From contig CAJFCJ010000005.1 of the NCBI GenBank assembly GCA_904063045.1, positions 2,474,165-2,538,164 on the forward strand: a DNA stretch of 64,000 nt, read 5' to 3'. Shown here piece after piece: positions 38,955-61,732 of the stretch; position 1 is the stretch's first letter; every line of letters starts with the position of its first letter. A model generated the notes under the pieces. That model was given only the letters and a program-made list of their open reading frames with translations, ran no database searches and was not told where the DNA came from. The position numbers and the translations under genes are program-made. The DNA is from Dimorphilus gyrociliatus (taxonomy: Eukaryota > Animalia > Annelida).

Positions 38955-39583
38955 TTGGTCTTTTTGTTTTGTATATAGTTGCAATCAAGTGTTATATTAA
39001 TATATATCAGCAAAGTTTATGGAGTGAGAGAAATGTTTAAATGGCAAAACACCTATCGAACAAAATTTTGGCCTTTAGTTACATAGAGGCGTTGGGACAG
39101 TTTCTCGAAAAGTGAATAACAACTTCCTCCTAACTTAAATGATCTGAATCAATAACTGTCGATAAAAAACGCGCTTAAACGACTTTTGGGGGATTAAGGC
39201 AACAATAGGGTGGTTTATCTAGATAAGCCATTTATCTCTAATGAAGATAGTGAGAGTATAGATAATTGGAAAAAGTTATTGAAAACATCTAACAGATTTG
39301 AACAGTCTTTAATAAAATGTTGTTATCTTTTCAATAGAAATTGTTTATTCATCATATTTTACTGATAGATAAAACAAAAGATAAGATAACATAGGAAATC
39401 AATTATACCTTGTATGATTGAAAATTTGAAAAAACGAAAATATAGAACACATCAAAAATATAAAAAAGAACGTATAAACGACGAATTCTTTTTTCAATAT
39501 AACATTGGTATCTAAGTATTTTTTTTCACTATATATCTTTTATATATAATTGATAAGGATAATAAAAGAAAACTATTTATATA

Positions 39584-41571
39584 TTATGTAAATATGCATT
39601 GTTTAATGAAAACTAAAATTTGTTGATGTCGATCAGTATCTTTCGAATTAGTACGTTTTTTCACAAACCTATTGTGAAAATGTACATATTCGTTAAAGAA
39701 ATATTTGACCAAATAAAATTTTTCATCTTCAGAAAGCTTTAGAGAGAAAATCATTCATTTTAATTCAATTATTATTAATTAATTATGTTTATAGAAATGA
39801 AAACAAGTCAAACCATTTCCAATTGTAAACCAGATAGAAATTGGCATATTTCCTTTCTATAGATGTTATCATCGTAGTATCTTGTCAAATTAAATATTAT
39901 TTCAATTAATTTCTTTATAGTAAATATCTAGAATGAATGATAAAAGATTATCTATTTAATAGTAATATAAGTAGATTCCTATACCTTTTTAGCGTAGGAA
40001 TAATACTTTTTAATAAATCTACATAGATATATTAAATTTATATAGTTTGTCTCATTATAGTATAATTCCAGAATTTGACCAGCTAATTTCAATACATTCC
40101 AAAAATATGATGATTTTGAAACGTCATATTCGGAGATTGATTGAAATAGATTGTTAATTATGAACTGATATATTGCTTTATTACTTCTCAGATTTTCAGT
40201 TAATAATTGATATTTTGTTCGATGGCAGAATATCTTAATGAATAAAATAAGTTATAGAATAACCATGTATATAACAGTTTTATATATGAATATATACCTC
40301 GAGAAGTTCCATTATCTCTTCGCTATCTGTTGATTTATTAATATTTCTAGTTATAACTCTATAACCAGAATCGTAGAGGAACTTTTGAAAATAACTCGTT
40401 TTGTCCTGTCTCGTAGATATTTCGTTGAGTAGTGTACTAAAGGCATTACCCGAAATTTTCTGATTTCAAAATCATAGATAGTTATGTAATATATTTTATA
40501 TATATATATATATAAATATTAATATTATTACAGTTAATCCTTTCATCGTTCTTTCTCCTTCCAAATTCCAGCCTCTAAATTCAGAATATATTCCTCCAAA
40601 CATACCGAAAAACTTCAATCGTTTGTGTTTATTTATAAAGTTTCTATAAGAAAATATACATCATAAATTATTAATAACCTATTTTGTAATATTTTAATAG
40701 TAGAATAGATCAATTACATTATATTCTCCTTCGATGCTTGCCAACCGGATATATCAAAATGGGTTAATTTTTCCCAATAGCCGGCAAGTAATAAGTCATC
40801 AATCTTTTTGTCTGCTAATTCATTATCGCAATTGTAGGGATAAAAACCGTCTCGCGTATATGGAAGTATGTCAACGTGTACTCTTGAAATATTCAATTTT
40901 TCTATAGAACTCTTGTTAAGTAAAGAGAAATATGTTATATCAACAGTATAGCTTTTAGGATATGAAATGTCAAAGACTTTCAACTTGTAGAACTCTCTAA
41001 GACAATCTAAATTTGTAATACTTGTATCGGTTAACGTTAGTTCCTCAATTTGCGGTAATTCAAGTGACAGGAAGTTCAGTTGATTATCTGTAATGTTTGT
41101 ACCAGTTACATCCAGTCTTAGTAATTGTTTAAAGCAAGTTAGATATTGCATATTCTGAATTTGATGCTCTAAATCAGAATTCTCCGAGAAATGACATTTC
41201 TTTAGATTCAATTCTTGAATGTATTTCGTGTTCAAGTAAGGAAGCCACTTTTCAAGGCCGACGTTTTTCATTAATTCCACTGTAATTGATCTTATATTAT
41301 GACCTTCTAGAAACTTTAAAGCTCTTTCCGACTCTATCTTTATTCCATTAAACTTTACATCGACCAAATAGCAAATTTCACTATCAAAAAAATCCAGTAG
41401 TCTTTCAGGTATACCGTTATGAAATTCACTGAGTTCTGTTAGAAGGTTTTCAGCCGCTAAACGATTGATAAGCCTAGATTTCTTAAATATCTCCTTATCA
41501 GTAAATATTATATCATGGTTTTTAACAACTGTCCAAAAAGATAGTTCAATTAAACTTTGAAATTGAATCAT
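39584..41571 (-). CDS. ZYG11/ZER1-like BC-box - LRR protein, paralogue Z1, 6 exons
   Basis: N-terminal FQSLIELSFWTV (BC-box-like); LRRs; FDISGW followed by exon 2 FINKHKRLKFFGMF, matching the ZYG11 LDVSG...FIxxRPxMQFVGL region. All exons splice in frame to TAA at 39586-39584. Confidence 0.8.
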
Positions 41572-41600
41572 TTTTCACACTTTCAACGACACAAGTTGTT

Positions 41601-41612
41601 CGCGCAGGCGCA
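41601..41612. promoter_or_regulatory. NRF1/Ewg-type motif upstream of Z1
   Basis: CGCGCAGGCGCA lies 30-41 bp upstream of the ATG in otherwise AT-rich DNA. An ETS-type ACCGGAAGT is at 41753-41761. Confidence 0.5.
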
Positions 41613-41956
41613 CTACAACAAGATTGAAAAAGATGCAAAAATAACTATTTCAGTATAAGTAGAAAAAGTTAAATAATTAAATAAATTTTAAATATTCTAT
41701 TTAATGTATATATAAACGAAACAAGTAAACAAAACTAATTTTTTTTATATAAACCGGAAGTCGATTAATTAACCGGAAATTGAAAGAAAAAAAGTTTCAT
41801 TCAAGTTAATCTTTATATGGAAAAAACTCAAGTTCAAAAAATAGATAGTCAACTAATGTTTATTTATTAACTAAGATAAAATACTTGTTTCTATCTAAGG
41901 TGCTAAACACTAAAAAAAAACAAAAACAAAGAAAAATACAAAATATTTGTCCATAA

Positions 41957-43900
41957 TTAAGAAATTATGTGATCTCTAATAAAAGAATAAACGAAACTAT
42001 CCGAAAAGCAAATGTTGTTACGACCTGAAAGATGTGGTGTAAATTCAATAAAGTATTCTCTAGCCAATAGGAATCTATCTGACTTATTCAGCTATAAAGA
42101 AGAAATTTTTTATAATAATTAATAATAAATATTTTATAATAAACAAACAATTTTACCTTTTTAACATCCAAGTTTGTTATAAATCTACATATGTGATTCT
42201 TATAAGTATCCCGATCAATATAAAGCGACGATTCAAATACTATTGGAAATAGTTGTCTATTGCTTAAATACTAAAAATCAAAACAAGACTTAAAAAGATG
42301 ATTTTTAATTAGTTAATTAATTAAACTTACATATTTGGCGAAAGAGTAATATTTCAATATAAATTTATAGAAATGTTTAAACTCTCCATCGGTAATAGTA
42401 GGACCAAATCCACGGAGTAATTGTAGTAGAATTTTCAACAAATCCGTAAATCTTGGAGAATCGGTTATATCAAATTCATTTATCAATTCGAAAAGTCTAT
42501 CAATAACGCTCCTATGCGCAATATAGATATGCTTACTCTCGTGACAATCTAATAGATATCTATACTTTTGACAGAATATCTGCAAATGATCAAATTATCA
42601 ATATAGAATACGTTTTTCTATGAATTTTAAAGTGAAACTAACCAAAAGAACTTCAATAATATCATTTAAAAATTCTTCTGTATAACATGAACTATGAATT
42701 AGTCTTTTATGCTTTTCATTGGAAGCAAACTGAAGAAAGTAGCAAAAGTTGTCTCTACGGCTTAGTATCTCATTGAGTATTGTACGAAAATCATCCTTTG
42801 ATATTCCCTTCAGAAGACAGAGAGAGAGAGAGAGAGATAGATTATGAAAACAACAGTTATCTTTATTTAAATAATTACCGTTAAATTATCAAAATTCTCC
42901 ATCTTCATAAGTTTACGATATGGAACTTTGTGATTAGTAGCATTGAATATGCCTAGATAATTCAATTTCTTGTGTTTTTCCAAAAACCGTCTACGAAACA
43001 GGAAACGTATTAAATATTAAATATTGAATATATTAATAAAAAATATCTTGTATACTTTATACTCTCTTCCGAAGCTTCCCATCCCGAAATATCCAAATGC
43101 TTTAAATTCTCCCAATCAGCTTCTTTCAAAAAAACGTTAATTTTAAAATATCCCACCGCATTCGGCTCTAGCGGCACTTGCATATTCCTGCCTGTATTAT
43201 CCTCTTTAGTAATATCCAAATACTCTAAAAATCTTAAATTTAACAGAGAATAATAAGATAATATCTCCATGTTAGATTTCGAAAATGCGAATGATAACTT
43301 CTTTAGTTTGTTCAATCTACGAAGATGATACAGTTCTCTTATTTCTGTTTCCGAAATGTTAACATCCTCTATCTGCGGAAGCTCGATAGAGATAAACCGC
43401 AGTTGGCGGTCCGTAATATTAGTAAGAGAAACATCCAACTTTCGCAACTGTTTAAAAGTTGCGAAATGTTTGATATTCTTCAACTGAACAGCAAGTCTTC
43501 GATTCCGAGAGAAGAAACAATTACGCAATGACAACTCCTCCAATCCGTTTGATTTAATGTACTTTATCCATCTATTTATACCAACTTTTAAAAAATTTTC
43601 GAATATCGTACTCTTTAATTGATGACCAATAAGGAAACGTAACGATTTTGAACATTCAATGTCCCTTCCATTCAATTCAACGAAAACCAAAAAACTAAAC
43701 TCCTTTCTGAAAAATTTCCATAAATTATCAATTCTAGCTCCGTAACAGAATGAAAACTCTTTTAACAAAGTTTCCGACACAAAGCGATTGAGGATAGGAT
43801 TTTTCTGACTTTTACCCAAAAAATAACTTGATATAACTGTATTCCAATTTTCAGAAATAGTAGCAATACAAATTTGCTGAAGACTTAAAACACTCGACAT
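41957..43900 (-). CDS. ZYG11/ZER1-like protein, paralogue Z2, 6 exons
   Basis: MSSVLSLQQICIATI; LRRs; LDISGW; exon 2 FLEKHKKLNYLGIF; exons splice in frame to TAA at 41959-41957. Confidence 0.8.
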
Positions 43901-43932
43901 TATTAGCTCAGTATAAAAATTCAAATATTATT

Positions 43933-43944
43933 TGCGCATGCGCG
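43933..43944. promoter_or_regulatory. NRF1/Ewg-type motif upstream of Z2
   Basis: TGCGCATGCGCG lies 33-44 bp upstream of the ATG at 43900. Confidence 0.55.
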
Positions 43945-44198
43945 TATAATTATTTCCTGTTAAAATTTTGATAAACATAAAAAAAAACCCGATTAATTTC
44001 CTAATTAACAAAAAAATGAAATAATTTAAATATACATATGTTAATTAATTTGAATAAATTAAATCGTAATTTTTCACTTAATTAGAATAATTTTTTAGCT
44101 TGTTTTTTGTATTATAGCCGTTATCAATGATGGATAAGTTATACTATAACTAGTTAATAGTTATATTCGTATATTGCAATTTATAAAATAGTTGTTTA

Positions 44199-46236
44199 TT
44201 ATTTTATTTCATTCGTACCACTTATCCAATTTCTAAAATATTTAACAATTTTATCGTGACAAGCTCTTGATCCTCTTCTTTCTAAGCACATGTGACCATT
44301 TCTCTCCAATTTATCATACGTTCTAAAATACGATTTAACCATAGTAAATCTTTCATCGTTATTTAACTATAATAACATAAGAAAACGGACTTAATAATTA
44401 ATAATTGATTTATTTAAATACATATATAACTAACCATACTTATATCTAATGTACTAATAAACTCCCAAAGTTGTTCCCAATAACAGAATGAATCGTATAC
44501 GTTAAATTCGAATATTCTTTCAATTAGTTCGCACCTATCCATAAACTATGATAAAATAGTAAAAGTATTGTTTTTTTTTATGTAAATCTCTCTCTATTTT
44601 GTTTTTTAAAAAAAAAAATACCATTTTACATTGTCCAAAGTTACTATAAACAAATTTAAAGAGAGCGTACAGATGTGGAGAATGAGTTTCATCCAATTTA
44701 GTTAATAGTTTTGCAGTCATTGGTAATATATTCCAAAAATAATCGGATTTATGTAGTTCATTTAATACTAAACGTATCATTATACTACTCAGTATTTTAC
44801 CATATTCCTGTTTTTGTTCAATATCTACAGCAACTGCTGAATCCAAAATAAGGAAATACTTTTCGCAGAAAACCTTTTTTTATTAATATTTTTTGTATTA
44901 ATTTTGTTTTTTTAAAAAAAAAATGGAAATAATATTGTGCTTTTATATTCCTTTTTACCGTTAAAGTTTCTTGAATATCAAGATTACTTCTATCTGGTGA
45001 ATTGTAATACATTGCTGCACTTGCTAAACCATTTAAAAAGGGCAAATGCCTCGTTGTATTAATTCTCATTGAGATTTCATTCATTTCATTTAAGAATTTA
45101 TCATTACTAATTCTCTAATGATTATAATTGAAAAAATGACAATAATTTATTTATAGCCTTAACTTGAATAGTAAAATTTTTTACCGTTAATTTACGGATA
45201 TCTTTACCCCGAACGTTCAAACTTTTGTAAGATTCTTGATATTTTCCAAATAGGCCAATAAACTCTAAATTATCATATTTTTTAATAAATCGTCTGAAAG
45301 GAAATTAATTAGTCGATTTACTTAAATATTAAATTATTTTGGCTTCATTTTGCGGTTTTACTTAATAATATCTGGCCTAACTCTCCATCCTGATAGATCA
45401 AGATGCGTTATATCTCGCCAATCAGCTTCTTCGAGAAGACTATTAATAGTCCATAATTGATCATCAGATGTGTTGTAATTTTTTAAGGAACGTAAATTAT
45501 CTCTATCTGAATTAGTTTTTTTGTCGCAGCCAAACTTTGAGATATTTAATTTTGTTAGATTTGTCATCTTTAACAGGGCGAAATAGGAACCATAAACCTT
45601 TGACTTTCTAGGATAAGAACAATCTAGTACCTTCAAGTAGGAAAATGCCAAAAGAACCCTGAGATCGCTGATAGACGTTTCAGATATATTTAAATCTTCG
45701 ACCTTCGAAGCTAATTCATATGACATAGTATGCAAATGTGTATTAGAAATATCCGTACAAGATAAATCCAACTTTACTAATTGTTTAAAAAAACACAAGT
45801 TTCTTATATCTGATATATCTTGCCCATTTCTATCTCCATCATTATCATCCGTAAAGCGACATCCTCTTAATGAAAGCTCTTTTAACTGACTACCGTCTAA
45901 ATATCCCATCCATTCACCAACTTTCCAACTAATTAAATATGTGACCTTCAATCTTTCAACAAGGTGACCCTTTAAAAAATTCATTGAATGCAAGTAAGTA
46001 ACGCTATTCCCATTTAACCTAATATTTATTAAATCGCAATACATCTTGCTAAATAATTTCAAGAAACGCTCGGGAAATTCAATATAGATATGGTTAATTT
46101 CGTCAAATATTTTTTCAGCGTAAATATAATTAATAATTCCATGTTTCTTGAAAACTTCCCCATTTAAGAAATTAACTTCGAAATTTCTAACAATACTAAA
46201 TAGAGCCATCTTTTCTAAACTTGGATGATTCGCCAT
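44199..46236 (-). CDS. ZYG11/ZER1-like protein, paralogue Z3, 6 exons
   Basis: MANHPSLEKMALFSI; LDLSGW; exon 2 FIKKYDNLEFIGLF; exons splice in frame to TAA at 44201-44199. Confidence 0.8.
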
Positions 46237-46492
46237 TTTTGGTTCAGTATCGGATATGACTTGGCTATTGAGTAATTTCAAAACTAAAATTTAGCCTATA
46301 AGAAAAAAAACCATAGAAAAATAGGTCAATTTATTTCTCCAAAAATGTAAATAAAAGATCAATTAATCTCTCAATTTCTTATAAGTTCTATAATGAATTT
46401 AATATTGTATTATTAAAATATAACAAATACTGTCACTATATGATAATGAACTTGTACATCTATAGGTTAATTAATAATTAAACGTTGTTTAT

Positions 46493-48498
46493 CTATCTTC
46501 GCATATACTTATGAAAAAATAATCGAATATTTTTGTCGTATAAATATTCCGTTTCTTGAGCTTGATAACCCTCTTCCAGTTTAAAACATTTATAATTAAC
46601 CATAAAACACTTAGCCAAACTATGATATTCATTTTTCGATAGCTAAAAAAAAAAACAAATTGCAAAATTATAAATGAATTAATTGATTATATTAAAATTA
46701 ATATGAAATTTTTAACAAACAGTTTCAACATCAACACTTTTCAACAACTTCCAAATAATCTTTCTATAACTTCTTCCATCAAATATCTTTTTGAAATTAA
46801 ACAAATAACGTATTAAACCTGATCTATTCATTAGCTATAAAACAAAAAGAAACATAATTTCATTCTAATTATCATAATTAATAAATATTCAAACCATTTT
46901 ATACAAGTGAAAATTGATTAGAAGTAACGAAAAAATACCAGAATTCCATGGAGTTATCATTTCGCTTCTTTTAATAATTTGAGGGACTAATTTGAATATT
47001 CTCCAAAAACTATCCGATTTATAATCTAGGAATTTAGTTAAAACAATTCCGCACAAGTTCAGATCGTACTTTAATTCTCGTTTACAGAATGAAGCATGAG
47101 TGTAAAATACAAATATTTCACTTATAACCTAAAATTGGGATAAATATATATTAAAAAACAGAACATTTCTATCAATATCTTTATAATTCTGACCTCAAAT
47201 ATTCTAGATTTAACATAACCAGGAATTGTATTTAAATCGGTTGTTTTCAAAGTTTCCAGTAGATTATCGTGACCCAAATATTTATCATATCTAGTTGCTA
47301 TATGATTCAAATCAGTCATAAATTCAATACTTGATAATCCCTGTTGATGTGAAAACAATTTATAATTAAATACAATTTCTAATTAAATATACTGTATTAT
47401 CGTACTGTTAATTCAAATATATCATTTTCTTGAAACTTTAGATTTCGATCAAAATCAATATTCGTCTTGAATAAACCCAAAAAACTCAACTTGTTGTGTC
47501 TCTGTACAAAGAACCTGTTGTTTTCCCCAAAGAAAATGTTTATTAGTATGTAACATATATAAATTCAATAATTACTTTAGTGAATCTATTGGAAGAATCC
47601 AACCAGACATATCAAAATACTTTAAATCCTTCCATTCGGCTTCTCTTAACAAAAAGTCTGTAAAATAATATTCTCCATTTCTTTTAAAGTATTCAGAAGG
47701 TAAAGTATTCTTGTAAGCTGAATGTCTTGCTATTTTGATTGACTTTAAATTTAATAATAGAATTAAAGATGGAACTGTTAATAATAGCTTTTCGTCAACT
47801 GGATAAGAGCAATCGAGAACTGTAAGCTTTGTAAATTTTTTCAACAATCCAAGATTCGATACGCAAGTTTCAGATATATTTAACTCTTGAATATTCTTTA
47901 ATTTATGAGATAAATATTTCAATTGCAAGTTACTTAATTTCGTTGAAGAGATATCTAATTTAACTAAATGTTTAAATTTCGTAATAGGTTTAACAGAATC
48001 TATTTTATCTTTTGTATTATTGCATGAAGATTTTGTAGAAGGAATGGGAGGAGAACGTGGAGTATAGGGAGCGGAAGAAGAAAAAGATGCAAAAGAAGTG
48101 GAAGTAGTTGTAACTAGACAACCTTTAACGCAAAGTTCTTCCAATTTTTTTGCGTTAATTATAGATAGCCAATGATTTAGCTTTATACTCTGTAAATGAC
48201 GTATACGAATAGACTTTAGCGGATGTCCATTGAGGAAATTTACTGCAGTCTTTTTAGTTATTCTATGTCCATTCAGGTCAACATTATGTAGCCAACATGT
48301 GTCTCTATTAAACACCTTTAAGAATTGTTGAGGTATTCCAATATAATAATCATCTATCTCCTTCAAGATTTTCTCCACAATATACGAGCATATAACTCTA
48401 TGTCTAAAGAGTAATTTCTTAGCATAGAAATGAGTTTCAAAGTTCTTAGCTATGCAGTACAAAGTAAGGTCTTCTAAACGTGGAATTTTTAAAGTCAT
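46493..48498 (-). CDS. ZYG11/ZER1-like protein, paralogue Z4, 6 exons
   Basis: MTLKIPRLEDLTLYCI; Ser/Pro insertion within the LRRs; FDMSGW; exon 2 FVQRHNKLSFLGLFKT; exons splice in frame to TAG at 46495-46493. Confidence 0.8.
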
Positions 48499-48754: not shown

Positions 48755-49618
48755 TTATATAGACGCCATACCAACTAAGGTATCTCCTCCTCCACCACCA
48801 CCTCCTCCTCCTCCTCCTCCTCCCTCTTTTATAGTATTTTTATTTGCATTCTTCTTGTAAAGTGATTGTTTTTTAGTGTTATCTGTGTAGTGGAGATGAC
48901 TGTTTACAGAAACTTCTGGTGGTCCTTGAAATATCGCCCTCGTAGCCATTAACTTCTCAAGCGAATCTTGCGTTTGCTTTTCATCGAAAAATGGACTCTT
49001 TAATGTATCTCTGATACTATCGAAAATTTTTCTTTTATCAGCAGCAAACTGAATTAGACTTTGGTTGAGTTGACATAATTCAGCTTGCAATTGAATTTCG
49101 CAATTATTCACATACTCTGAGAATGATTTAAAAAGATCAGCAATTTCAATTTCCATCATCTTCTTATACTTTTCCATTTCATCCTCTTGTTTTCTCCTTA
49201 TTACTTGGGATTTTTCAAATATTTGATTTAAAGTACGAATTTTACAACTATCTTCACCATGATCGTAATCGATACATTTCGAACAAAGTTGCTCAGCTTT
49301 ACAAGTCAAACATAACAAGTTTGGTTTCATAACTAAATTATTGTGTTTCTTACACATTTCTTTATCAGTGCGCTGATCGTTTATTGATGCTTTTATTAAA
49401 CTTTTTGGTAGACCATTAACGCCATCTTTTGAAAGCTTTGTCTTTGCTCTACAGTTTGGACACTTGATAAACTTTCCACGAGATATCTTCAAAAGACACT
49501 CGTGACAGAATATATGTTGACAAGGTAGAACTCTCGGATCTTTATTTAACCAAATATCTAAACATACAGAACACTCAAGAGTTCTTGCATCGATGACGTA
49601 ATCCTTATTAGATTCCAT
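48755..49618 (-). CDS. TRIM-like RING - B-box - coiled coil protein with a poly-Gly tail
   Basis: LECSVC...PCQHIFCHEC...CPNC; B-box CKKH...CLTC...CSKC...H; coiled coil; G12 run. The last codons may be spliced at GTATGG. Confidence 0.8.
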   Translation of the reverse strand: MESNKDYVIDARTLECSVCLDIWLNKDPRVLPCQHIFCHECLLKISRGKFIKCPNCRAKTKLSKDGVNGLPKSLIKASINDQRTDKEMCKKHNNLVMKPNLLCLTCKAEQLCSKCIDYDHGEDSCKIRTLNQIFEKSQVIRRKQEDEMEKYKKMMEIEIADLFKSFSEYVNNCEIQLQAELCQLNQSLIQFAADKRKIFDSIRDTLKSPFFDEKQTQDSLEKLMATRAIFQGPPEVSVNSHLHYTDNTKKQSLYKKNANKNTIKEGGGGGGGGGGGGGDTLVGMASI

Positions 49619-50587: not shown

Positions 50588-52412
50588 ATGTGTCGTTTAT
50601 TCAAGTTGTTATTTATCTTATTGAACTTATTTTCCTGTAAGAAGGCAATTTATATAATAATTATAAATGCGTATATATATATATATATATATAATTGATT
50701 TTTTTGCAGATGGACAATGCCTACACTGTCCTCAAACTCCTAAAGGTTGGATAGGATTCAAGACGGAGACGAAATGCTATAAAGTATCAAATTTAGAGGA
50801 GTCTGGTATTGAAAATGCTATGAAAAAATGTCAAGAAACATTCGATAATGGAGATTTAGCTGATTTGCAATTCGAAGATTATGCAACATTTTTCCCAAAA
50901 CTTTCTCAGATTACAAAGGAGAATTTAATATTAAAGACTACGTTTTTGCATAATTTGCCAGCTAGTCTTTTCTATATTAATTTTAAAAAGGAATTTGATC
51001 ATTATCCAATAATCTTTTGGATTAATAATCAACCCCTTTCAATACCAACTGAATATATTGACAACAGTATTAGAGGCACAGATCTTCATTTGATAGTGAA
51101 TGAGTATGTAAAAGATAGAAATTTTATATAGATATAAACATATGTACTCACGTTTTTTTTAGGGCTCATGGAATGTTTAAGATAAACAGAGAATTTGAAA
51201 ATGTTAAGAACGTTTTATGTCAAGTTCCGGCAATCCTTAAATGTCCAAAAGTTCCGGCTGATAGTTATTCTTTTAAAACAAACAGAAAATGCTATATTGT
51301 AAAGCGTTTAAACAATTCTGAAAGATCAGTAGAGGGAGCCAGACAAGCGTGTTCATCAACAGGAAAATTCAAATTGGCAAATCTAGAAACTGAAACTGAA
51401 TTACATTCAAAATTTATACCGTTTGTTGAATCGCTACCTTTAAAAGTTGAGAGAGAAATTACGAATATTCTACCAACTAGTACTGTTGGCTTCTATTTTG
51501 AATATATTAAAGAGGCGAGAGGAACTTATTACTATCCAAATGGAGAAGTAATACCATCAATTGAAACTCAACAAGATGAAGGACGGTCAGAACTTGCATT
51601 GTTTTCCCATATAATGGAGTAAGTACTATGATATTCAGTATTATTATAAATAAAATAAATACGTTGTTTGTACTTTTTAGTAATACTTATGTATTTGGAT
51701 ACGGATATTATTCAGACGAAATTACAGCAGCTATCTGTGAATATAGAGAACCTCACTTAATTATCGATCGTTATATGCGTCATTTTGTTGAGAATGAGGA
51801 TAAATATATCTGTTATGATCTATCAGGAAATGCAAATGATCGTTATATACTGTTTAAAGATTCTTTATCAAAAACAGTAATAATTGGACAACTACAAGAC
51901 GATTGTCATTTTGGTAAAATATTTATAATTACTCCAATGTCGAATCTGACTCTAAGCTCAAATGATAAATGGTCTATTGGCGATGTTATAAACACAAAGA
52001 TAATACATGTTGTTGTCCTTAATCAAAAAAAATTAAGATTTATTATTAAAACTCCATCGCCAACTGTATTTACTATTGAAATAAGAAAAAGTGACGAAAA
52101 GAAATATTTGGATATCACCGTTAATCAAATAAATAAGGAAACATCATCGGGAATTTTTGGTAATAATTCTTTTATCATTATATACAGAATTGTAAATTGA
52201 TCTTCAATAATTGTTCTTTAGGCGATATTCATAAAAAGAATTTTGTATTCTCCGGAGATGAAATTGACGATTCAACAAGTACTTTGAACGTTGAAGGAAA
52301 ATTGTTTGAGGCAAAAGTAATAGCAAAGGATGGCGAATCTCCATTTTGGCTTTTATCTAAAGAAGCGGCATTCTATCCTAATCATTTAACGGATTATATT
52401 CTTTCAAATTAA
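50588..52412 (+). CDS. Secreted CTL-CTL-ITIH_C/VWD-like protein, paralogue A (DPH replaced by DRY)
   Basis: Signal exon MCRLFKLLFILLNLFS splices to YGQCLHCP. Two CTL-like units (CP..P.GW...KT..KCY...A...C); ICYDLSG, IIGQL, SSGIFG, AFYP...DYIL. Confidence 0.8.
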
Positions 52413-52764
52413 AATTTTCAAAATAAAATTTCGAAATGTTACAAAAAATATAAATACCACTCATCCTGTTGTTAATTTAACTACTTACATTATAGACCAA
52501 TTATGAACAATGACTGGTAAACTTTAAGTAAAATTGATATTAATCAAGTATATAACTGTGATTAATATTTACAACAGTGGATGATAAGACTCAATAACAC
52601 AACACGATATAGAACAAGGTTACTGAGTAAAACACTTGCTTTGTGCATTTGAAGAGACAAACAATTCGATATTATATATCGATTATTTGACTGTCAAATT
52701 GTTCATATCTGCAAAAAAAAACACCTAAAAAAATAAGATAATTTATTAGTAATAACAATTAAAA

Positions 52765-54818
52765 ATGATACTTTTCAAAGTTTTTATCCTCTATCAGATT
52801 GTAGTTGTTTGGTGTTTAGATTGTCCAGATTTACCCGATGGATGGTATTCTGTAAAAACGGAAGCCAAGTGTTATGGTTTCCGTTTTCTTCGAATTGACG
52901 AAAGAAACTATACAATCGCTCAACGAATATGTTTAGATGAATTGATAGAAGGACATATAGCCGATCTTGAATTTGAGAATATCGACGAACTTGGTTATAC
53001 GTTAATTGATTCTTTAGATGAAAATTCGAATGTTCCTCGAGAAACTGTAATTAATGGCATTCCAGTTCATGGTTTCTTTATAGGTTATCAAACTTTATTA
53101 GAGGATGGAAATATTAACTATCTTTGGCTAAGTGGAAGACTTGTTAAGGATCAGGTCAAAATTCAAGGTCCAAAAGACAAAGGTCTTTTACAGTTTATTG
53201 TGAATGACACTCTGTATGAACTTTAGTTTCAGTAGCAGTATATACAATGCTCGTCAGAGGAAAGTGGACAGAAAATATGGGCTCATCTAGCTATAGAAAT
53301 GTAAGTCTCAGGGCAACATATATTTCAAATCCTTCAATTGAAGAGAGATCATACTTGCTGAACATCAAGAAGAGAATAACTCCTAGATTTCCTACTAAAC
53401 ACTACTTACTTAAAAATTAACATCAATTATTCTTGAAGTTCTATGACCACTGTGAACAACTTTCTTATCTATTTAAAGTCTTTGGTGCCATAAAGATCCT
53501 TCTTTATCATGCTAATGTACGATGATGCCTATTTGGACGTTATCCATTAACTTGTGACGAGCATTGCATACTTATATATAACACTTGTAATAAAATAGCT
53601 AAATTAACATTTACTTTTTTAGACGATCGGCGACCTTTTATAGCGGACAACCGGAAATAAATGTCGGAAGTGTTCTTTGTCAAGTTCCATCAACAATAAA
53701 ATGTCCGAATGTACCGAAAAATTGGCTAGGTTTCAAAACAAATCGAAAATGTTATATTTATCGTCCTCTGGAAGTTGAGGAGAGGTCATTTGAGAATTCA
53801 AAAGCTATTTGTGAGGGAATTGGAGGAATGAAAATGGCGAAATTATTTGGAGAGACGGAGCTTCTTTTAAGATTTGTTCCGAAAGTAAACGAAAATTCAA
53901 ATTTGTTTGATAAGACAGTACTCTACAATGGAATTTTATATCCCGGATTCTATTTTGACGATGAGCAGGCTATCAGTGAAGGAAATCATTTTGGCATTGT
54001 TGTTACAGAGTAAGTTGATCCAAATTGTATACTTAATCAATTATAATATGTTTAAAACTAATTGTCATTTAACATTACGATTAGAGATACGTTTGACTTA
54101 TATTTACCGGAAAAGACTACTAGAATGACGGGCGTCGTTTGCGATATAGAATCAAGTTCGGGTAAACAAGATCCCCATATGCGTCATTTTATTCAGAGAT
54201 ACGGAAAGTATATTTGCTACGACCTTATTGGTGAAGGTCATCAAAAATTCATTTTGTATAAAGATCTACCGACGAATATTATCATTGCTGGCCAATTGAG
54301 AGACGATTACTATTTTGGAAATATAATCGTACAGAGTTCTTTATTCAATTATACAATTAGAGCTGATCATCTGTGGAATATTCGAAGAGAAATTTATCAT
54401 GATAGACAATTAAGTATACAAATAGAAAATTTAGAAGAGATAATTATTATCATTAACGAAATACATCCAAGTGAATTTGTAATTAAAAAACATAGAAATA
54501 GTATTGGTTCAAATTACTTAAATGTTCAAGTTATACAAATGAACAATGTAGAGAGATCTGGTGGAATATTTGGTAATGTTTTCCTTTCAAAATGATATTT
54601 TTATATAAAAAGAAAAAGAAATTTATTTTTCAGGTGATCTTGCAAAGAAGAAAATTTCATTTTATGAAAATATTCAAGAGAATTTAAAAGGTGCCATTGA
54701 TATTGAAGGAAAGATATTTGATGCTACAATAACTGAAAGAGAAAATTCTATATGTTGGCTAATATCTGCTAAAGCCGCACTTTACCCTAAAGAAAAAAGA
54801 GATTATCTATTAGATTAA
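52765..54818 (+). CDS. Secreted CTL-CTL-DPH-ITIH_C-like protein, paralogue B
   Basis: Signal peptide, two CTL-like domains, DPH at 54170-54178, ICYDLIGE...IIAGQL...SGGIFG; TAA at 54816-54818. Confidence 0.8.
53245..53566. mobile_element. 322-bp Tc1/mariner-like MITE in intron 1 of paralogue B
   Basis: Imperfect 26-bp TIRs (CAATGCTCGTCAGAGGAAAGTGGACA vs CAATGCTCGTCACAAGTTAATGGATA; first 12 bp perfect). TA on the left flank, CA on the right. Absent from the short homologous intron of paralogue D. Confidence 0.7.
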
Positions 54819-55055
54819 ATGTTATTACTTTCAAGTGTTTTTATCTTATTCAAATATAGTCAATTTTTATCGACACTATATAATACAAATACAAAAATAT
54901 GAATATGAAATAATATTAACATTATTCAACTAATTCTTGTACATAATTCCTATTGTTTTATATTTTTAATGAGAACAATATGGTTGCGTAATACTAACGC
55001 ATTCTCCATTTAATAGTAATAACGGTTGGTTTAGTACGCGTTCATCGAGTTCGAG

Positions 55056-55129
55056 ATTGGCGGGTTTTCGTTGAACTCTATTGAAAGGTGTATTTTAAAA
55101 CGCTACATTAGGAAACCTGGTTATAAATA
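55056..55129 (+). promoter_or_regulatory. Putative Pol II promoter of the Gag-like gene (reverse CCAAT plus TATA)
   Basis: ATTGGCGGG at 55056-55064 and TATAAATA at 55122-55129, about 300 bp upstream of the ATG at 55426. Confidence 0.4.
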
Positions 55130-55425
55130 GTTAAGTATTTCAGAAAAAAGATGGCATTAGTGGTACCTTTGTCAAGTACTCTAAAAGTAAAACTACTCAA
55201 TTGTCTACCAGTCCTGTCTTATTATATATAATATAAGAATTCTTCTTACTTTTATTGAACTTATTAATTATTTCGAATTTCTAATTAACGAGATAGTTAA
55301 AAGTAAAATAAAAGGAATAGAATTGGATATTTATCTTTTAATTATATTCGTGGATTGTAAAAGACTGTTAAAACGTTATTGAAGAGATTGGAATATTACT
55401 GAGGCGCCCTTGATGTTCCATCAAA

Positions 55426-56340
55426 ATGTCTGATAATAACGGATATCTCATTCCAGGAAAAAATATTCCATTAGAATATACAGGAGGCGAAAATTTTTAC
55501 AATAATGAAAAGCATGAAGAAGTAGCAAAGATCTTTGATACGGTCATCTATTCTTTGGGATCGGTGGAAAGTTCTCTAGAGAAACAGGTTCGAGATAGTT
55601 GCCTTGAACTTAAAAAATTAAGAAATTCGATTGATGAGCTAAGAAACATCATCTTAGGTCAGAAGAATTGTGAAAGTAGAAGTTTTCTCAAACGTGATAT
55701 TAAATTTTCGAATGATAAGAGTGAAAGTTCAACAACCTTCAACTGCCGTTGTAAGGATCGACCGATCAGTCTTCCGAAGTGGAATCCAAAGTTTAAATAC
55801 GACGGAAATCCAAGGACCTATCACGACTTTATTGAAACTCATAAAATGATAGTAAACGCTGGAAATTACTATGATTGGCAAAAATTAGACATGCTGCTTG
55901 ACTCTTGCAAAGGAGAGGCTCTGGATCTTATTTCAAGGTGTTATATGTCTGGTCCAAAAGGCTATGAGGCCGCTCTGGAGATCCTAGAGCGAATGGGTGG
56001 CAGTAAAGTATCGAAACAGGTATCCTTATACATCGAACTCGCTGAGATGCCACCAGTCGATAAAAGAGACTTGAGAACCCTTACGAATCTTCGAAATTTG
56101 GCTAATCATGCTTTCACTATGCACAAAATTTACGGTGATCCTCCTGTAGATTCTCTCGTTAGATTTAAAGGTCTCCTTATCGAGAAAAAGTTGAACGAAC
56201 AACTCAGAGAAGACTGGAAAAATTTTGGAATAGAAGACAATGCTCCTGAAAAAACAAAGTTCGAACGCCTTGTCGAATTCTTATTTATAACTGTAGAGAA
56301 GTCGAAAAAGGAGTATGAGAGAAAACTAAATGAGAACTAA
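55426..56340 (+). CDS. Stand-alone BEL/Pao-type (DUF1759-like) Gag capsid protein, 304 aa, intronless
   Basis: N-terminal coiled coil, then ISLPKWNPKFKYDGNPRTYHDF...QKLDMLLDSCKGEALDLI...YEAALEILERMG (DUF1759 pattern) and KKLNEQLREDW...FERLVEFL. No CCHC knuckle, pol or flanking LTR visible. AATAAA at 56391-56396. Confidence 0.8.
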   Translation: MSDNNGYLIPGKNIPLEYTGGENFYNNEKHEEVAKIFDTVIYSLGSVESSLEKQVRDSCLELKKLRNSIDELRNIILGQKNCESRSFLKRDIKFSNDKSESSTTFNCRCKDRPISLPKWNPKFKYDGNPRTYHDFIETHKMIVNAGNYYDWQKLDMLLDSCKGEALDLISRCYMSGPKGYEAALEILERMGGSKVSKQVSLYIELAEMPPVDKRDLRTLTNLRNLANHAFTMHKIYGDPPVDSLVRFKGLLIEKKLNEQLREDWKNFGIEDNAPEKTKFERLVEFLFITVEKSKKEYERKLNEN

Positions 56341-56900
56341 CATTCCTTCTTTCTTGTACGAAAGACAAAAAGGAAAAACAGATTTATCTCAATAAATGTA
56401 TTTGAAAAACAAACTTATTAAGTGTCTATATATAAAACGAAAGAAACTTGATAAGTGTGCTACAGCTTTAGAAAACTGGTGAAATGTAAGATTTACTTTG
56501 TATAATATGACACAACTGTCAAGTAGTACTACACGTACCTTTTACATAATTAGAATATAAATATTATAATATTATAACTTAAGTTACATTAAAAGCTATT
56601 TTAGGTATTGATTATCAGAATGTAATTATTGACAATATACTAAAATATGCTGGAATTTTTTATTAACGGCTGTAAGAGTGTGTCTGTTCTTGTTTTTCAG
56701 ACTGATTGACAAGACTCAACTGTATAGAAATGGCAAAAAAGAACAATGTAAATGAACAGTATGTTTCTCAGAACAGTTTGATGATTTGAAAAGACGAAAA
56801 TTACGGCATCTAATGTCGATTGTTCGCCTTATGTTTTATTCAAAAAGACTAAAAAAAACACCTAAAAAATAAGATAATTTATTAGTAATAACAATTAAAA

Positions 56901-58612
56901 ATGATACTTTTCAAAGTTTTTATCCTCTATCAGATTGTAGTTGTTTGGTGTTTAGATTGTCCAGATTTACCCGATGGATGGTATTCTGTAAAAACGGAAG
57001 CCAAGTGTTATGGTTTCCGTTTTCTTCGAATTGACGAAAGAAACTATACAATCGCTCAACGAATATGTTTAGATGAATTGATAGAAGGACATATAGCCGA
57101 TCTTGAATTTGAGAATATCGACGAACTTGGTTATACGTTAATTGATTCTTTAGATGAAAATTCGAATGTTCCTCGAGAAACTGTAATTAATGGCATTCCA
57201 GTTCATGGTTTCTTTATAGGTTATCAAACTTTATTAGAGGATGGAAATATCAACTATCTTTGGCTAAGTGGAAGATCGTTAACGGATCCGAATGATATTG
57301 AAGGACCTTTAAAGAACAGCTACTTTCAGTTTATTGTGAATGATAATCCGTATGAATTTTAGTTCTATATACATAAGTATATGATATATTGCTTGACATT
57401 AAGTCGCTTTATTTATTTTATAGGCGATTGGCGACCTTTTACAGAGGAGAACCGGAAAGAAATGTCGGAAATGTTCTTTGTCAAGTTCCATCAACAATAA
57501 AATGTCCGAATGTACCGAAAAATTGGCTAGGTTTCAAAACAAATCGAAAATGTTATATTTATCGTCCTCTGGAAGTTGAGGAGAGGTCATTTGAGAATTC
57601 AAAAGCTATTTGTGAGGGAATTGGAGGAATGAAAATGGCGAAATTATTTGGAGAGACGGAGCTTCTTTTAAGATTTGTTCCGAAAGTAAACGAAAATTCA
57701 AATTTGTTTGATAAGACAGTACTCTACAATGGAATTTTATATCCCGGATTCTATTTTGACGATGAGCAGGCTATCAGTGGAGGAAATCATTTTGGAATCG
57801 TTGTGACAAAGTAAGCTATTGTCTAGTTTAACAGCTTTGTATGATCTTATTTATTACACGAAAACATTTACAGGAGTTCTTTCGATTTGTATCTTGCAAC
57901 CAAAATTTCTAAAATGACAGGTATTGTATGTGATATAGAATCGAGTTCGCTTAAACAAGATCCCCATATTCGTCACTATATACGAGAAGATGGAAAATAT
58001 ATTTGTTACGATTTTTCTGGTGAAACCAGACAAAAATTCGTATTGTTTAAGGATTTAATATCGAACATTATCATTGCTGGTCAATTGCGGGACGACGATT
58101 ATTTGGGAAATATAATTGTACAGAGTACATTTTTTAATTATACAATTATGGCTGATCGTCCATGGAGTTTTAAAGGGAATATATACTTGGACGATCGTTT
58201 ATCCATTAAAATTTTAAACATTAATACTGTTATCGTTACTATTAAAAGAAAAGCTCAAAGCGTATTCGTAATTACAAAGCATAGAAATATTGCTAACTCT
58301 CAATATTTAAATGTTCAAGCTAGTGAACTTGATAGTGATAAAGTTACAGGAATAATGGGTTAGGTTAAAGATTATACAAATTTTTAAACAGATATTTGAA
58401 ATTTTATAGTAAAATGTCTCTTCTTAGGTGATATGCTAAAGAAAAAGATGATTTTTTTCGAAGGAATTCAAGTGTATTCAAAAGGGGCTATTAACATCGA
58501 AGGAAAAACATTCGACGCTCGATTAATTGAACGAGAGAAATCTTCGTGTTGGCTTCTTAAGGCTGAAGCCGCATTTTATCCAAAAAGGTTAACTGACTAT
58601 TTATTAAATTAG
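56901..58612 (+). CDS. Secreted CTL-CTL-DPH-ITIH_C-like protein, paralogue D
   Basis: Same exon layout as B; DPH at 57959-57967; TAG at 58610-58612. Confidence 0.8.
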
Positions 58613-59280
58613 AAAAGGTAAGTCATATTTTTTTGGAAGTTTTCTTTTTTTTTTTTTTTGTAAAAATGGATGATTTTATTACACAAGTGTTGATCTCTAT
58701 TTGTTTTATCGCAAAGTAACAGATTTCTGTTAAAACTTTTTTTATCTACCACAAACAATATAATGCTTATCTTTAAAACAAGAAATTTTTTTTCACTATT
58801 TATAGGCACGTTAAAAACGTTCTATTGACCCAATATCGACTCAAGTAGTCAAGCCTTTACATACGTCATTATATATTATTACTCATAATAGGAAAACCTT
58901 AGTAAACCTCTGTCTATCCTTTCTATAGCAATGTTATAATATTGTATAAGTAAAGATATTTTAGAATGTTTCTTATCTTTCACAGATGAAATTACAACCA
59001 TTCAATGATAAAAACCATAAAAGGTTTTAGAATTGTAATTGCAAAATCTTCGTAATTGTGTTATTCATTATCCCCTAGTTTTAGGAGTCAAAAGATTTAA
59101 AAATAGTTCCTGCGTATATCATTATATTGTACTATTCTATATATAAATATATATAATTGTATTTGTGGAGTTTATTGATCATAAGATTTTCTATATAAGA
59201 TCATTGCAAGTTTAGTTAGGAATCATTATTGAAACGGAAAAGCTGAGCATTTCGCTTAAAACTAATTAAAATAGTTTGGA

Positions 59281-59850
59281 ATGGAACTTTCGATGTATGT
59301 TATTGATCCTGGATATTTAGAATGTTCAATTTGTTTGGAATTATGGTTGGAAAATGATCCAAGAACTTTATCTTGCCAGCATACTTACTGTTATGCATGT
59401 CTAAAGCAAATCTTCAGAAATGGTATTATAAAATGTCCCAATTGTAGAATTCTGGTAAAAATAAGATCAGTAAGAGATTTACCAAAGAATCTTGCTTCTT
59501 CATCAATAAGCAGTCAACAAACGAAAAAAATACATGAAATAGAAACTATTCGAACTTTGCTTCTACAGAATCTGCGTCGTCTAAAAGTAAAGAACGATAA
59601 AATGAAATCGTTATTAGAATGCGAAGTAGAAACTTTAAAGAATTTTTGTCCTTCAATCCATAAAAGTAAAACTACAAATAAATATAAAAATGCAGCTGTT
59701 CAGACTGTTGAGAAAGATGCTTCAAAACGTCCCAGAAAGAAGGAAAGTATGCTAAACAAGTTCAAACTATTCAAAAAGACTAAAACTTATCGTTTGAATG
59801 ATAATTCAAAATTATTTAGTAAAAGTTTTCTTTCAATGTATAATTTTTAG
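59281..59850 (+). CDS. Short TRIM-like RING - coiled coil protein (no B-box), basic tail
   Basis: LECSICLELWLENDPRTLSCQHTYCYAC...IKCPNC; clear paralogue of 48755-49618. Confidence 0.75.
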   Translation: MELSMYVIDPGYLECSICLELWLENDPRTLSCQHTYCYACLKQIFRNGIIKCPNCRILVKIRSVRDLPKNLASSSISSQQTKKIHEIETIRTLLLQNLRRLKVKNDKMKSLLECEVETLKNFCPSIHKSKTTNKYKNAAVQTVEKDASKRPRKKESMLNKFKLFKKTKTYRLNDNSKLFSKSFLSMYNF

Positions 59851-60119
59851 ATGTATAGATCTATCCTTAATATTTCTCTATTTAAAAATGTGTTGTCTTA
59901 AATTGAGAGCATTTATATTATTCTGGTCAAATAAATTATATACAGAGTCTTTTAAAGTTATAGTTTCTTATATGTTTTACTTGATTTTAAAATAATAGAA
60001 CTCTAGTTAAAAATTTTTGAGTCAGTTGTTAATAGTTAATATTAACCTAAATATCAAACTAACGACTTGTTCAGCCTCGTTAACATCTAGATAAAGTTCT
60101 TTGATAAAAACTGTAAAGT

Positions 60120-61732
60120 ATGAAATTTTTTCATTATTTTCTTCTTTGTCAAATTGGAGTTATTTGGAGTTTCGACTGTCCAACTCTACCTCAAGGCTTT
60201 AAATTGGTGAAAACATCACATAAATGTCTCGCCATTCGATTTCTTGAGCCGTCAGAAAGACAATTTATGACTGCAAAGGCAATTTGTCAAAATGACTTAG
60301 ATAATGGACAGTTAATTGATTTAGAATCGCAGCATAAAATGGAATTTATTATGACGATAATGAATTTTGTAAACAAAAATCCCACTATTCATCGAGGTGT
60401 CGACATGAACGGGAAACTTTTCCCTGGTTTCTTCATTGACTTTTCAACATTGACCCAGAATGGAATAATCAGATATTTTTGGCCTAGTGGACGTGAAGTA
60501 GAACCTGCTCAAATTGGAGGACCAGATCGGACAGATCTTCTCTTTTTCGTGCTAAAAGATGATGGAAGCCCGTCCGGTCTTTATTCTGGAGAAAACGAGT
60601 CAAATATTGGAAGTGTTGTTTGTGAAGTTCCATCTCTACTTAAATGTCCTCCTACTCCTGACGGTTGGCTAGGTGTCCAATCAAATTCGGTATGTGGCAT
60701 TTTACGTCCATTGAAAGAGTTTGAGAGAACTTGGATGGGAGCGAAAAGTGCATGTGAAAGTGTTCCGGGTATGGAGTTGGCTAGATTAACAAATAATGAA
60801 AACATTGTCTTTAATATCGTAAAAGTCATAAACCAGAATAAAGAATTGTTTGAAATAGAAGGTGATCCGACTGTGAAACCTTCGTTCTTTTTTTACGAAA
60901 CAATAAATCTCTCTAATCTAGATATAGATAAAGCTGGTTTAGCTATCATAGGGTAATAACAATTGTAAAATAAAATTAAAGAGCTCACTTTTCTTATTCA
61001 TTTTTAGACAAAAACCGAAGTTTATAACAGGTTCTCAGCCAATAACTGGAACACTTTGTTTTTTAAAGGCAGACTCAAGTCAAGGAGATCCTCATCTTTT
61101 ACACTACATACCGAGTTCTGGAAAATATATTTGCCATGATTTAATTGGTGAAGCTGGCCAAAAGTTTATACTATACAAAGATTTATTGACGAATGTTATC
61201 ATTGCTGGAGAATTGCGGGATGATTACTATTTCGGTAAAATAATTATCTCAAGTTTGTTCTTCAATCATACGATTAGCGCAAATGAAGTATGGAAAGCGA
61301 GAGAGACGTTTTATTACGAGAAGAAATTAAAGATAGAGGTGCTGTCTCTCAATGAAATAATAATTACAGTTAATAATGGTCAATCTGGTAAATTCATTAT
61401 CAAGAAGAATTCAAATAGTATTCATTTAAGTTACTTGAACTTTCATATTATTCAAATGAATGAGAAAAGATCTGGTGGAATATTTGGTAAATATAAACAA
61501 AAACAGATTAAAGAGTTTAATAATTAATTAAATATAAATCGTTTTAGGCGACATTGCTAATAAAAAGTATGAATTCTTCGAAAGAGTACAGAGAAACTCT
61601 ATGGCTGCTGTTAGAATTGACGGAAAAACATTTACAGCTAGGATAACAGAAAGAGATCATCTATTTTGTTGGCTTTTGCCAAATAAAGCCGTATTCTATC
61701 CAAAAGCGACACGGGATTATATATTAGATTAA
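60120..61732 (+). CDS. Secreted CTL-CTL-GDPH-ITIH_C-like protein, paralogue E
   Basis: Signal peptide, two CTL-like domains, GDPH at 61084-61095, ICHDLIGE, IIAGEL, SGGIFG; TAA at 61730-61732. Confidence 0.8.

Follow-up and report, generated by a model that had tools for sequence, protein, structure and literature searches.

Domesticated capsid genes such as Arc, dArc, PNMA and PEG10/RTL are the subject of intense study. Tetrapod Arc, in particular, has a helical or coiled-coil region at its N-terminus and lacks NC. Moreover, Fv1, the sheep enJS56A1 Gag and the truncated Gag of Ty1 (p22) act in restriction, either by binding to capsids or by co-assembling with them. In the survey by Wang and Han (2021), all seven animal gag co-options came from Ty3/gypsy, and the PNMA genes, which are mammalian, are also Ty3/gypsy-derived (PMC8321522). 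The sole Bel-Pao-derived co-opted gag in that survey was Crtg14, a fungal gene of Tremellales and Trichosporonales that is single-copy and conserved across taxa (PMC8321522).

The gene described here was found in a window of 64 kb (the whole stretch of DNA that was analysed, 64,000 nucleotides) of Dimorphilus gyrociliatus, a tiny marine annelid with a genome of 73.8 Mb. In dinophilid-type annelids, it is likely to have become a host gene through the domestication of gag from a BEL/Pao LTR retrotransposon, and it is apparently the first BEL/Pao-derived domesticated gag to be reported in an animal. Compared by description, it resembles Crtg14 in being a co-opted Bel-Pao gag, but it belongs to an annelid instead of a fungus. 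Like Arc and dArc1, it stands alone as a host gene derived from Gag and encodes a predicted two-lobed capsid-like domain, and, as in tetrapod Arc, the N-terminal helix is kept and the NC is missing. In contrast, Arc and dArc1 derive from Ty3/gypsy, while the worm gene carries the DUF1759 of BEL/Pao, a different superfamily. In searches for Arc homology, no Arc-family Pfam match was found at E ≤ 1, and no sequence match was found in PDB.

To begin with, the coding sequence occupies positions 55426–56340 of the + strand (as do all the features with coordinates below) and consists of a single exon, which the ORF list gives as an ATG start followed by 304 codons without interruption and a stop, just as the first-pass annotation of this DNA had read it. 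The product is identical to that of an annotated gene on contig CAJFCJ010000005.1 of assembly GCA_904063045.1. A chance ORF was ruled out by an open frame of 304 codons in DNA of 28–30% GC together with two intact homologues. The G+C content at third codon positions (GC3) was 0.355, compared with 0.21–0.31 in six neighbouring ORFs. As in BEL/Pao (Belpaoviridae) Gag, the C-terminal 180 residues match DUF1759 (PF03564), the Pfam match covering residues 125–266 (55798–56223) with 27.7 bits (E 3e-6), only marginally above the gathering score of 25.4. One of the two homologues (P0003) reached 28.6 bits, and the other (P0002) fell short of E 0.01. A profile built from the 304-aa protein and its two homologues retrieved 210 matches at E ≤ 1e-3, and the long ones that were scanned for domains carried the full Pao set (DUF1759, Peptidase_A17, RT or integrase, and DUF5641) in four out of six cases and a partial set in the other two. 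Furthermore, DUF1759 was present in 43 of the 45 members of an alignment comprising the three homologues and 42 shorter profile matches. The assignment to BEL/Pao Gag, proposed earlier from DUF1759, is thus secure despite the marginal Pfam score, because the profile search retrieves Pao-type polyproteins. At the level of sequence, the protein is strongly diverged from BEL/Pao elements, and its nearest element-type relative, out of 1.84 billion representative proteins, matched with E 2e-12.

The structure of the protein was predicted with AlphaFold2, for which the three homologues alone gave an unusable model (pLDDT 47), so that the 45-sequence alignment was used instead, resulting in a mean pLDDT of 83.3 and 193 residues at ≥90. 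The model begins with a long helix at residues 24–83 (55495–55674; pLDDT about 95), a candidate coiled coil in which a single heptad register runs through all three proteins (reached by 19–52 out of 2000 shuffles) and whose sole long indel measures 14 residues, that is, two heptads. A poorly conserved linker at residues 84–128 (55675–55809) follows, predicted to be disordered with pLDDT <50 at residues 85–110. Two predicted four-helix lobes complete the protein, the first resembling a capsid N-terminal lobe (residues 129–207, 55810–56046; pLDDT 90–97) and the second a capsid C-terminal lobe (residues 216–303, 56071–56334), whose last helix immediately precedes the end of the ORF. The N-terminal coiled coil and the two capsid-like halves ending at the stop, which had been noticed from the letters alone, are therefore both recovered in the predicted model, which gives no sign that a capsid fold is missing. 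The combination of helix and capsid domain is shared with BEL/Pao Gag and was probably inherited from it instead of being a host innovation, since the profile matches of several BEL/Pao relatives reach into the N-terminal helix.

The model was then compared with known folds, as had been proposed for capsid (CA) structures, and capsid proteins headed the rankings in both searches, although the matches were statistically weak, none of them reaching E ≤ 1e-3 and the TM scores normalised against the targets ranging from 0.31 to 0.45. In PDB, Foldseek placed the PNMA2 capsid on top, together with dArc1, HIV-1 CA, MLV CA, the Arc CTD and the Copia capsid (best E 0.065), and the matches to the PNMA2, dArc1, HIV and MLV capsid proteins extended over 160–225 columns. 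PNMA2 was the best structural match, with a probability of 0.97, a TM of 0.44–0.45 against the target, about 170 columns and E of 0.065–0.2, while the capsid domains of Arc and dArc1, also among the top matches, were weak (E 0.2–1.6). In BFVD, the top matches were caulimovirid coat proteins and metavirus Gag (probability 0.97–0.98, best E 0.012). Regarding sequence, weak PNMA Pfam matches were found in two DUF1759 relatives and none in the 304-aa protein itself. Neither the 3- nor the 45-sequence profile gave any capsid match in PDB sequence searches; the family profile yielded weak matches to nucleocapsid zinc knuckles only, a region missing from the 304-aa protein, and no solved structure of DUF1759 was returned by these searches.

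The locus differs from BEL/Pao elements in the parts that surround Gag. The BEL/Pao proteins returned by the profile search were used unmodified for the domain scans, the alignment and tblastn. The CCHC zinc knuckle, found at least once in 23 of the 28 relatives longer than 700 aa, did not appear in any of the three proteins. Moreover, when 28 long Pao-type polyproteins were searched by tblastn against the window and the two homologous contigs (L001 and L002), the matches fell on the gag ORF only, with no remnants of protease, RT or integrase from pol; no RNase H was found around the gene either. No LTR-like direct repeats were detected in the 64-kb window, where seeds of 8–12 nt gave only short matches at chance level, nor were LTRs or other terminal repeats present within 7 kb on either side of the gene, and no second gag copy was found in the window. 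Because LTR-like repeats and pol matches are both missing, the locus was not classed as an LTR element. These searches bear out the first-pass claim that zinc knuckle, protease, RT, integrase and an LTR pair are all missing, and they gave no sign of the many LTR-flanked copies that would have spoken against it. A further difference from BEL/Pao Gag is the fixed place of the gene at a host locus that has been conserved.

A search of 5.8 billion clustered proteins brought up just two homologues of comparable length. The first, of 323 aa and 53% identity, lies on a 9.8-kb contig of another species (L001), and the second, of 330 aa, comes from a different sample and a 1.1-kb contig without flanking context (L002). 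All three ORFs (304, 323 and 330 aa) are intact, with their start codons aligned and their stops falling within a few aligned residues. Shorter fragments or kin did not appear: the capsid-like domain, used alone as the query in a word-based protein search, retrieved only the protein itself. Regarding copy number, one gag was found in 64 kb, and in the protein databases each sample is represented by a single cluster at 90% identity, whose one member lies on one contig. The syntenic orthologue sought as a check on the earlier reading was found on L001, where the order LRR (−), RING (−), paralogue A (+), gag (+) and paralogue B (+) is collinear with 46.8–58.2 kb of the window, a synteny of five genes in one other species. 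The identity of the gag product between the window and L001 (53%) falls inside the 40–73% range of the neighbouring proteins, and the intergenic spacers flanking gag measure 340–690 nt in both species. The truncated Gag would have been fixed before the split of D. gyrociliatus and the second species.

The gene is flanked by two secreted multi-exon paralogues. The upstream one, B1 (52765–54820, the end being read from the sequence), is 97–98% identical to B2 in exons 1–2 and 75% identical in exon 3, and it represents an extra copy relative to the related species. The downstream one, B2 (56901–58610, end approximate), is the orthologue of the gene located downstream of gag on L001. The two neighbours had been described as lectin paralogues, of which the paralogy stands while the lectin identity is weak: with each exon searched separately, Pfam gave no match at all up to E 10, and all the weak sequence matches in PDB (E 0.005–1.4) were C-type-lectin-like, the best being NKG2-D with E 0.005. 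The assignment of the flanking genes as C-type-lectin-like is thus weakly supported by their sequences. Between B1 and the gene, a non-coding stretch (54984–55202), a candidate promoter or 5′ UTR, contains four short collinear words shared with the related species; this signal is weak, the longest shared word being 14 nt, a length reached in 12 out of 500 shuffles. The stretch includes ATTGG at 55056–55060 and TATAAATA at 55122–55129. Past the stop, a candidate poly(A) signal AATAAA lies at a distance of 50 nt (56391–56396) and is the only AATAAA in 56341–56600, while at the related locus an AATAAA lies 93 nt past the gag stop. The CCAAT- and TATA-like elements and the AATAAA reported earlier are therefore present, but their statistical weight is not upheld: on one strand of DNA with 28–30% GC, such motifs occur once per 480–880 nt (AATAAA once per 478 nt), and promoter and poly(A) motifs carry little weight alone because they are common in AT-rich DNA.

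Pairwise comparisons reveal purifying selection on the gag coding sequence, with the capsid-like domain the most strongly constrained. Between L001 and L002, dN/dS was 0.116 (bootstrap 95% CI 0.068–0.173), for a pair that may not be strict orthologues, as L002 has no context, and it was 0.098 in the capsid-like part. The pN/pS ratio of the window sequence against each homologue was 0.37–0.41, with pS saturated. Furthermore, the capsid-like domain was 68–83% identical across species, and the N-terminal part including the linker showed 25–27% identity between the window and the homologues. The expectation of a dN/dS below 1 agrees with these values, which do not fit neutral evolution. Active element lineages, too, show purifying selection on gag when compared with one another.

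Among the alternatives, that of a domesticated gene acting mainly as a restriction factor survives best, although we consider it unlikely. The truncated Gag would co-assemble with, or bind to, the capsids of incoming or endogenous BEL/Pao or other LTR elements and thereby block them. As with Fv1 and Ty1 p22, the protein comes from Gag and has kept its capsid-interaction domains, the remainder of the element being absent, and a Gag that is truncated with its assembly domains kept and the NC missing is what such a factor would look like. In the present genome the source superfamily is scarce or missing, with gypsy-like elements accounting for 1.67% of the assembly and all other LTR elements together for 0.23%, and the searches gave no close BEL/Pao Gag relative. 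Moreover, the neighbourhood consists of tandem, fast-diverging RING, LRR and C-type-lectin-like paralogues of the kind typical of innate-immunity clusters, an argument from guilt by association. However, the pairwise dN/dS values, which average over sites in a set of three sequences, are low, at 0.10 for the capsid-like domain as a whole, the identity of this domain across species is unlike that of an arms race, and there is no known target element. The gene thus differs from Fv1 and Ty1 p22 in giving no arms-race sign in pairwise dN/dS, in having no known target and in its source element. A conserved cellular role is favoured over arms-race restriction because the pairwise dN/dS is low.

A decaying gag-only leftover of a BEL/Pao insertion, still open after the deletion of pol and the LTRs and with no host function, is very improbable. 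Such a leftover would explain the lack of introns, as expected of an element gene, the GC3 above that of the neighbours and the marginal Pfam score, which would reflect long divergence from the elements. However, three ORFs of 304–330 aa have stayed intact despite saturated synonymous sites, dN/dS is 0.12 and its confidence interval reaches no higher than 0.17, the locus has kept its position in a second species, with 40–73% identity between host proteins, and an unselected frame of 900 nt in DNA of 28–30% GC would soon gain stops. Overall, the present data argue strongly against this explanation. Finally, a gag-only non-autonomous mobile element, present as a single copy in the window and moved in trans by an autonomous BEL/Pao, has next to no likelihood: gag-only non-autonomous LTR elements are known in other organisms and the L002 contig shows nothing of the genomic surroundings of its copy, but no LTRs or terminal repeats occur within 7 kb on either side, the location is common to another species, each sample holds one 90%-identity cluster with one member on one contig, and the flanking spacers are just 340–690 nt in both species.

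Taken as a domesticated host gene, the locus supports the earlier proposal of an independent co-option of BEL/Pao Gag on the grounds of family, predicted fold, missing LTRs and pol, synteny and dN/dS. Through its capsid fold and coiled coil, the protein may homo-oligomerise into an assembly that is capsid-like or serves as a scaffold, as Arc and PNMA proteins do, and any cargo binding would need other surfaces, because there is no dedicated zinc-knuckle RNA-binding module. The candidate functions would be those of a self-associating capsid-like scaffold or of a restriction factor. It is doubtful that this animal-first BEL/Pao capsid gene still builds capsid-like assemblies with a cell-to-cell or vesicle-linked function; if true, it would represent a third independent route to such a role, after the Ty3/gypsy-derived Arc/dArc and PNMA/RTL. 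The host is culturable and miniature, its genome is very compact and poor in TEs, and developmental transcriptomes are publicly available; the gene offers a host-anchored sample of the BEL/Pao Gag domain DUF1759. Furthermore, the layout that has been kept, a long helix plus a capsid domain with the NC lost, is the same as that of tetrapod Arc, so that convergence may be compared across superfamilies. The domestication of this gene would mean that the third great superfamily of LTR retrotransposons has also been tapped for capsid domestication in animals.

The gag-derived gene was found as a single-exon coding sequence of 304 codons at 55426-56340 on the forward strand of the window, starting with an ATG and running without interruption, as the first-pass annotation had described. 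The same single-exon 304-aa gene is present in the public annotation of D. gyrociliatus at ~2.52 Mb of contig CAJFCJ010000005.1, the assembly GCA_904063045.1 being the published genome of this miniature annelid (PMC7854359). The wider bounds originally given to the locus (55056-56396) run from ATTGG through AATAAA around the ORF. All three signals claimed for the flanks were located, namely an inverted CCAAT (ATTGG, 55056-55060, +) and a TATA-like element (TATAAATA, 55122-55129, +) upstream of the ORF, and AATAAA (56391-56396, +) 50 nt past the stop codon. However, these motifs carry little proof alone because they are so common in this window of 28-30% GC, where their mean spacing on a single strand is 478 nt for AATAAA, 547 nt for TATAAA and ~850 nt for CCAAT or ATTGG. 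The gene (55426-56337) had a GC3 of 0.355 and an overall GC of 0.373, compared to 0.21-0.31 and 0.28-0.34, respectively, in six neighbouring ORFs, which could be residual foreign composition or expression-linked codon bias.

The sole Pfam match of the protein, DUF1759 (PF03564), covered residues 125-266 and scored 27.7 bits, the gathering score being 25.4. Since this score was marginal, the family assignment was tested independently with a profile built from the window protein and its two homologues, which was run on a set of 1.84 billion representative proteins. A total of 210 proteins were retrieved at E ≤ 1e−3, the best match outside the query's own cluster having an E-value of 2e−12; the named sources among the nearest matches included a sea spider as well as a schistosome relative. 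The matches entered the domain scans, the alignment and the tblastn searches as the unaltered database proteins. Four of the six long matches scanned presented the full BEL/Pao Gag-Pol architecture (DUF1759, followed by Peptidase_A17, i.e. the Pao peptidase, RT and/or integrase, and DUF5641), and the other two a partial Pao domain set. Furthermore, DUF1759 was recognized in all 10 shorter profile matches scanned and in 43 out of 45 members of alignment A3, which comprised the three homologues and 42 shorter matches. The retrieval of Pao-type polyproteins and the DUF1759 of the relatives argue for a sound BEL/Pao origin at the level of sequence, in agreement with the Gag membership first proposed, and the gene is far removed in sequence from every element copy in the databases searched.

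The remaining parts of such an element were looked for in and around the ORF. A CCHC knuckle was found in none of the three proteins, i.e. the window protein and its homologues P0002 and P0003, compared to 23 of the 28 relatives longer than 700 aa, and the family profile gave weak retroviral nucleocapsid matches in the PDB, in the region past the C-terminal end of the window protein. Searches by tblastn with 28 long Pao-type polyproteins matched the gag ORF alone, both in the window and in the contigs encoding the homologues (L001 and L002), which bears out the reported lack of zinc knuckle, protease, RT and integrase. A flanking LTR pair was likewise confirmed to be missing, as no LTR-like direct repeats appeared in the repeat searches of 48-64 kb, nor at fine grain over 54.6-57.0 kb, the only repeat families there being the neighbouring paralogous genes. 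A search with the gag protein found no second copy within the 64-kb window, in which the 2.1-kb region around gag was unique.

The protein was modelled with AlphaFold2 from the 45 sequences of A3 (mean pLDDT of 83.3, with 193 residues at ≥90), the model from three sequences having a pLDDT of 47. The N-terminus was predicted to be disordered, followed by a single long helix (residues 24-83), a predicted disordered linker (pLDDT <50 over residues 85-110) and two four-helix lobes (residues 129-207 and 216-303), with the ORF stopping directly past the last helix. The coiled coil previously noticed corresponds to the long helix, where a single heptad register was found in all three proteins, with 59-65% hydrophobic residues at positions a/d versus 20-23% elsewhere, a signal reached by 19 to 52 of 2000 shuffles. 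In addition, the only large indel within this helix, 14 extra residues in the homologues (window 55597/55598, residues 57/58; columns 58-71 of A1, the alignment of the three proteins), was exactly two heptads long and kept the register. The profile match reached into the helix in several element-type relatives (e.g. profile positions 28-313 and 34-301), which suggests that the helix-plus-capsid layout is probably an ancestral BEL/Pao Gag inheritance, rather than a host addition. Foldseek returned as top PDB matches the PNMA2 capsid (probability 0.97, E 0.065), the dArc1 capsid domain, HIV-1 CA, MLV CA, the Arc C-terminal domain and the Copia capsid, and as top BFVD matches caulimovirid coat proteins and metavirus Gag (probability 0.97-0.98, E 0.012-0.03). 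No match in either database reached an E-value of 1e−3, and TM-scores were ≤0.45. The two capsid-like halves previously described correspond to the two predicted lobes, and the model is consistent with a retroelement capsid fold but does not prove it. The window protein was balanced in charge (49 K+R vs. 48 D+E), and all three homologues had six cysteines each, including a Cys-x-Cys (window 55735-55752, residues ~104-109) kept within the linker, which is otherwise poorly conserved and predicted to be disordered.

Among 5.8 billion protein clusters, only two homologues were close to the window protein in length: P0002 (323 aa, 53% identity, Logan sample SRR23372228) and P0003 (330 aa, 50% identity, Logan sample SRR31837527). 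No shorter kin were found with the capsid-like domain alone. P0002 is encoded on the 9.8-kb contig L001, where gag (+) lies in a five-gene block (LRR (−), RING (−), three-exon secreted paralogue (+), gag (+), another secreted paralogue (+)). By both blastn and tblastx, this block is collinear with 46.8-58.2 kb of the window, so that a syntenic orthologue exists in one other species. The identity of gag (53%) was within the range of its neighbours (RING 73%, LRR 40%, paralogue exons 46-57%), as expected from vertical descent with the locus. The two loci differed only in that D. gyrociliatus has an additional paralogue, B1 (52765-54820), which separates paralogue A from gag. P0003 comes from the 1.1-kb contig L002 (1-1094), with just the ORF, 78 nt before it and 23 nt after it, which would be a transcript if its sequencing run is RNA.

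The secreted paralogues A, B1, B2 and C form an array of four multi-exon genes (50667-61723, +). Gag is indeed flanked by paralogues, as first noticed; as for their lectin identity, no Pfam match was found exon by exon, the third exon type had no recognizable family, and the weak PDB sequence matches were all C-type-lectin-like (NKG2-D, E 0.005; tunicate lectin; snake-venom lectin-like chains). Between B1 and B2 (52715-54382 vs. 56851-58171), exons 1-2 and ~50 nt of upstream DNA were 97-98% identical and exon 3 75%, which suggests that gene conversion or a partial duplication took place recently around gag, without including it; L001 has one B copy only. Further away were five divergent RING-finger ORFs (~480-530 aa, with pairwise identities of 20-36%, only the RING domain being recognized by Pfam), one at 1175-2629 (+) and four in tandem at 30483-38984 (−), and a shorter RING gene adjoining the gag locus (48755-49618, −). 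Four tandem LRR ORFs (~285-308 aa, with pairwise identities of 26-36%) were located at 40714-48498 (−), the last of which is kept beside the RING gene on L001. The window also contained an ORF in which leucine-rich repeats precede a rhodopsin-type 7TM segment (6718-8046, +), an LGR-like receptor exon, and another ORF with a von Willebrand factor A domain (17621-19219, −).

The three homologous ORFs were all intact, with aligned start codons and stops within a few residues of one another. Nei-Gojobori counts (own script) gave for L001 versus L002 a dN of 0.149 and a dS of 1.28, i.e. a dN/dS of 0.116 (bootstrap 95% CI 0.068-0.173), with 0.098 in the capsid-like part and 0.118 in the N-terminal part. 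For the window gene against either homologue, dN was 0.40-0.42 and pN/pS 0.37-0.41 with a saturated pS (0.77-0.87), the capsid-like part being 68-71% identical and the N-terminal part 25-27%. Gag of active elements is likewise under purifying selection; therefore, the case for domestication needs selection together with synteny, loss of everything else and rarity. Overall, these results show a Gag pared down to its oligomerisation parts, conserved and fixed at a host locus. By analogy with Arc or PNMA proteins, the protein probably acts by associating with itself, using the coiled coil together with the capsid lobes, and would do so without the zinc-knuckle RNA-binding part. The main functional rival is a restriction factor, Fv1-like or like truncated Ty1 Gag, which would fit the few LTR elements of D. 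gyrociliatus beyond the gypsy-like 'Dingle' (gypsy-like 1.67% and other LTR 0.23% of the assembly) and the position of gag amid fast-diverging RING, LRR and C-type-lectin-like genes arranged in tandem, but not the low dN/dS. Neither a neutral relic nor a non-autonomous mobile element fits well with the missing element parts and lack of a second copy in the window, the relatives and synteny on L001, and the purifying selection.

As a domesticated capsid gene, it resembles the Arc, PNMA and RTL families in layout and predicted fold only. It shows no sequence-level match to them (Pfam, PDB) and comes from a different superfamily, and thus is not a member of any of them. In their survey of 2,011 eukaryotes, Wang and Han identified 14 deep gag co-options; the seven in animals were all of Ty3/gypsy origin, and the only one of Bel-Pao origin, Crtg14, was fungal (PMC8321522). 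The D. gyrociliatus genome paper makes no mention of the gene (PMC7854359), and in the full-text literature searched neither the co-option of a BEL/Pao gag by an animal nor a link between DUF1759 and domestication was described. Within that literature, the gene is a domesticated capsid gene from a superfamily so far without an animal report.
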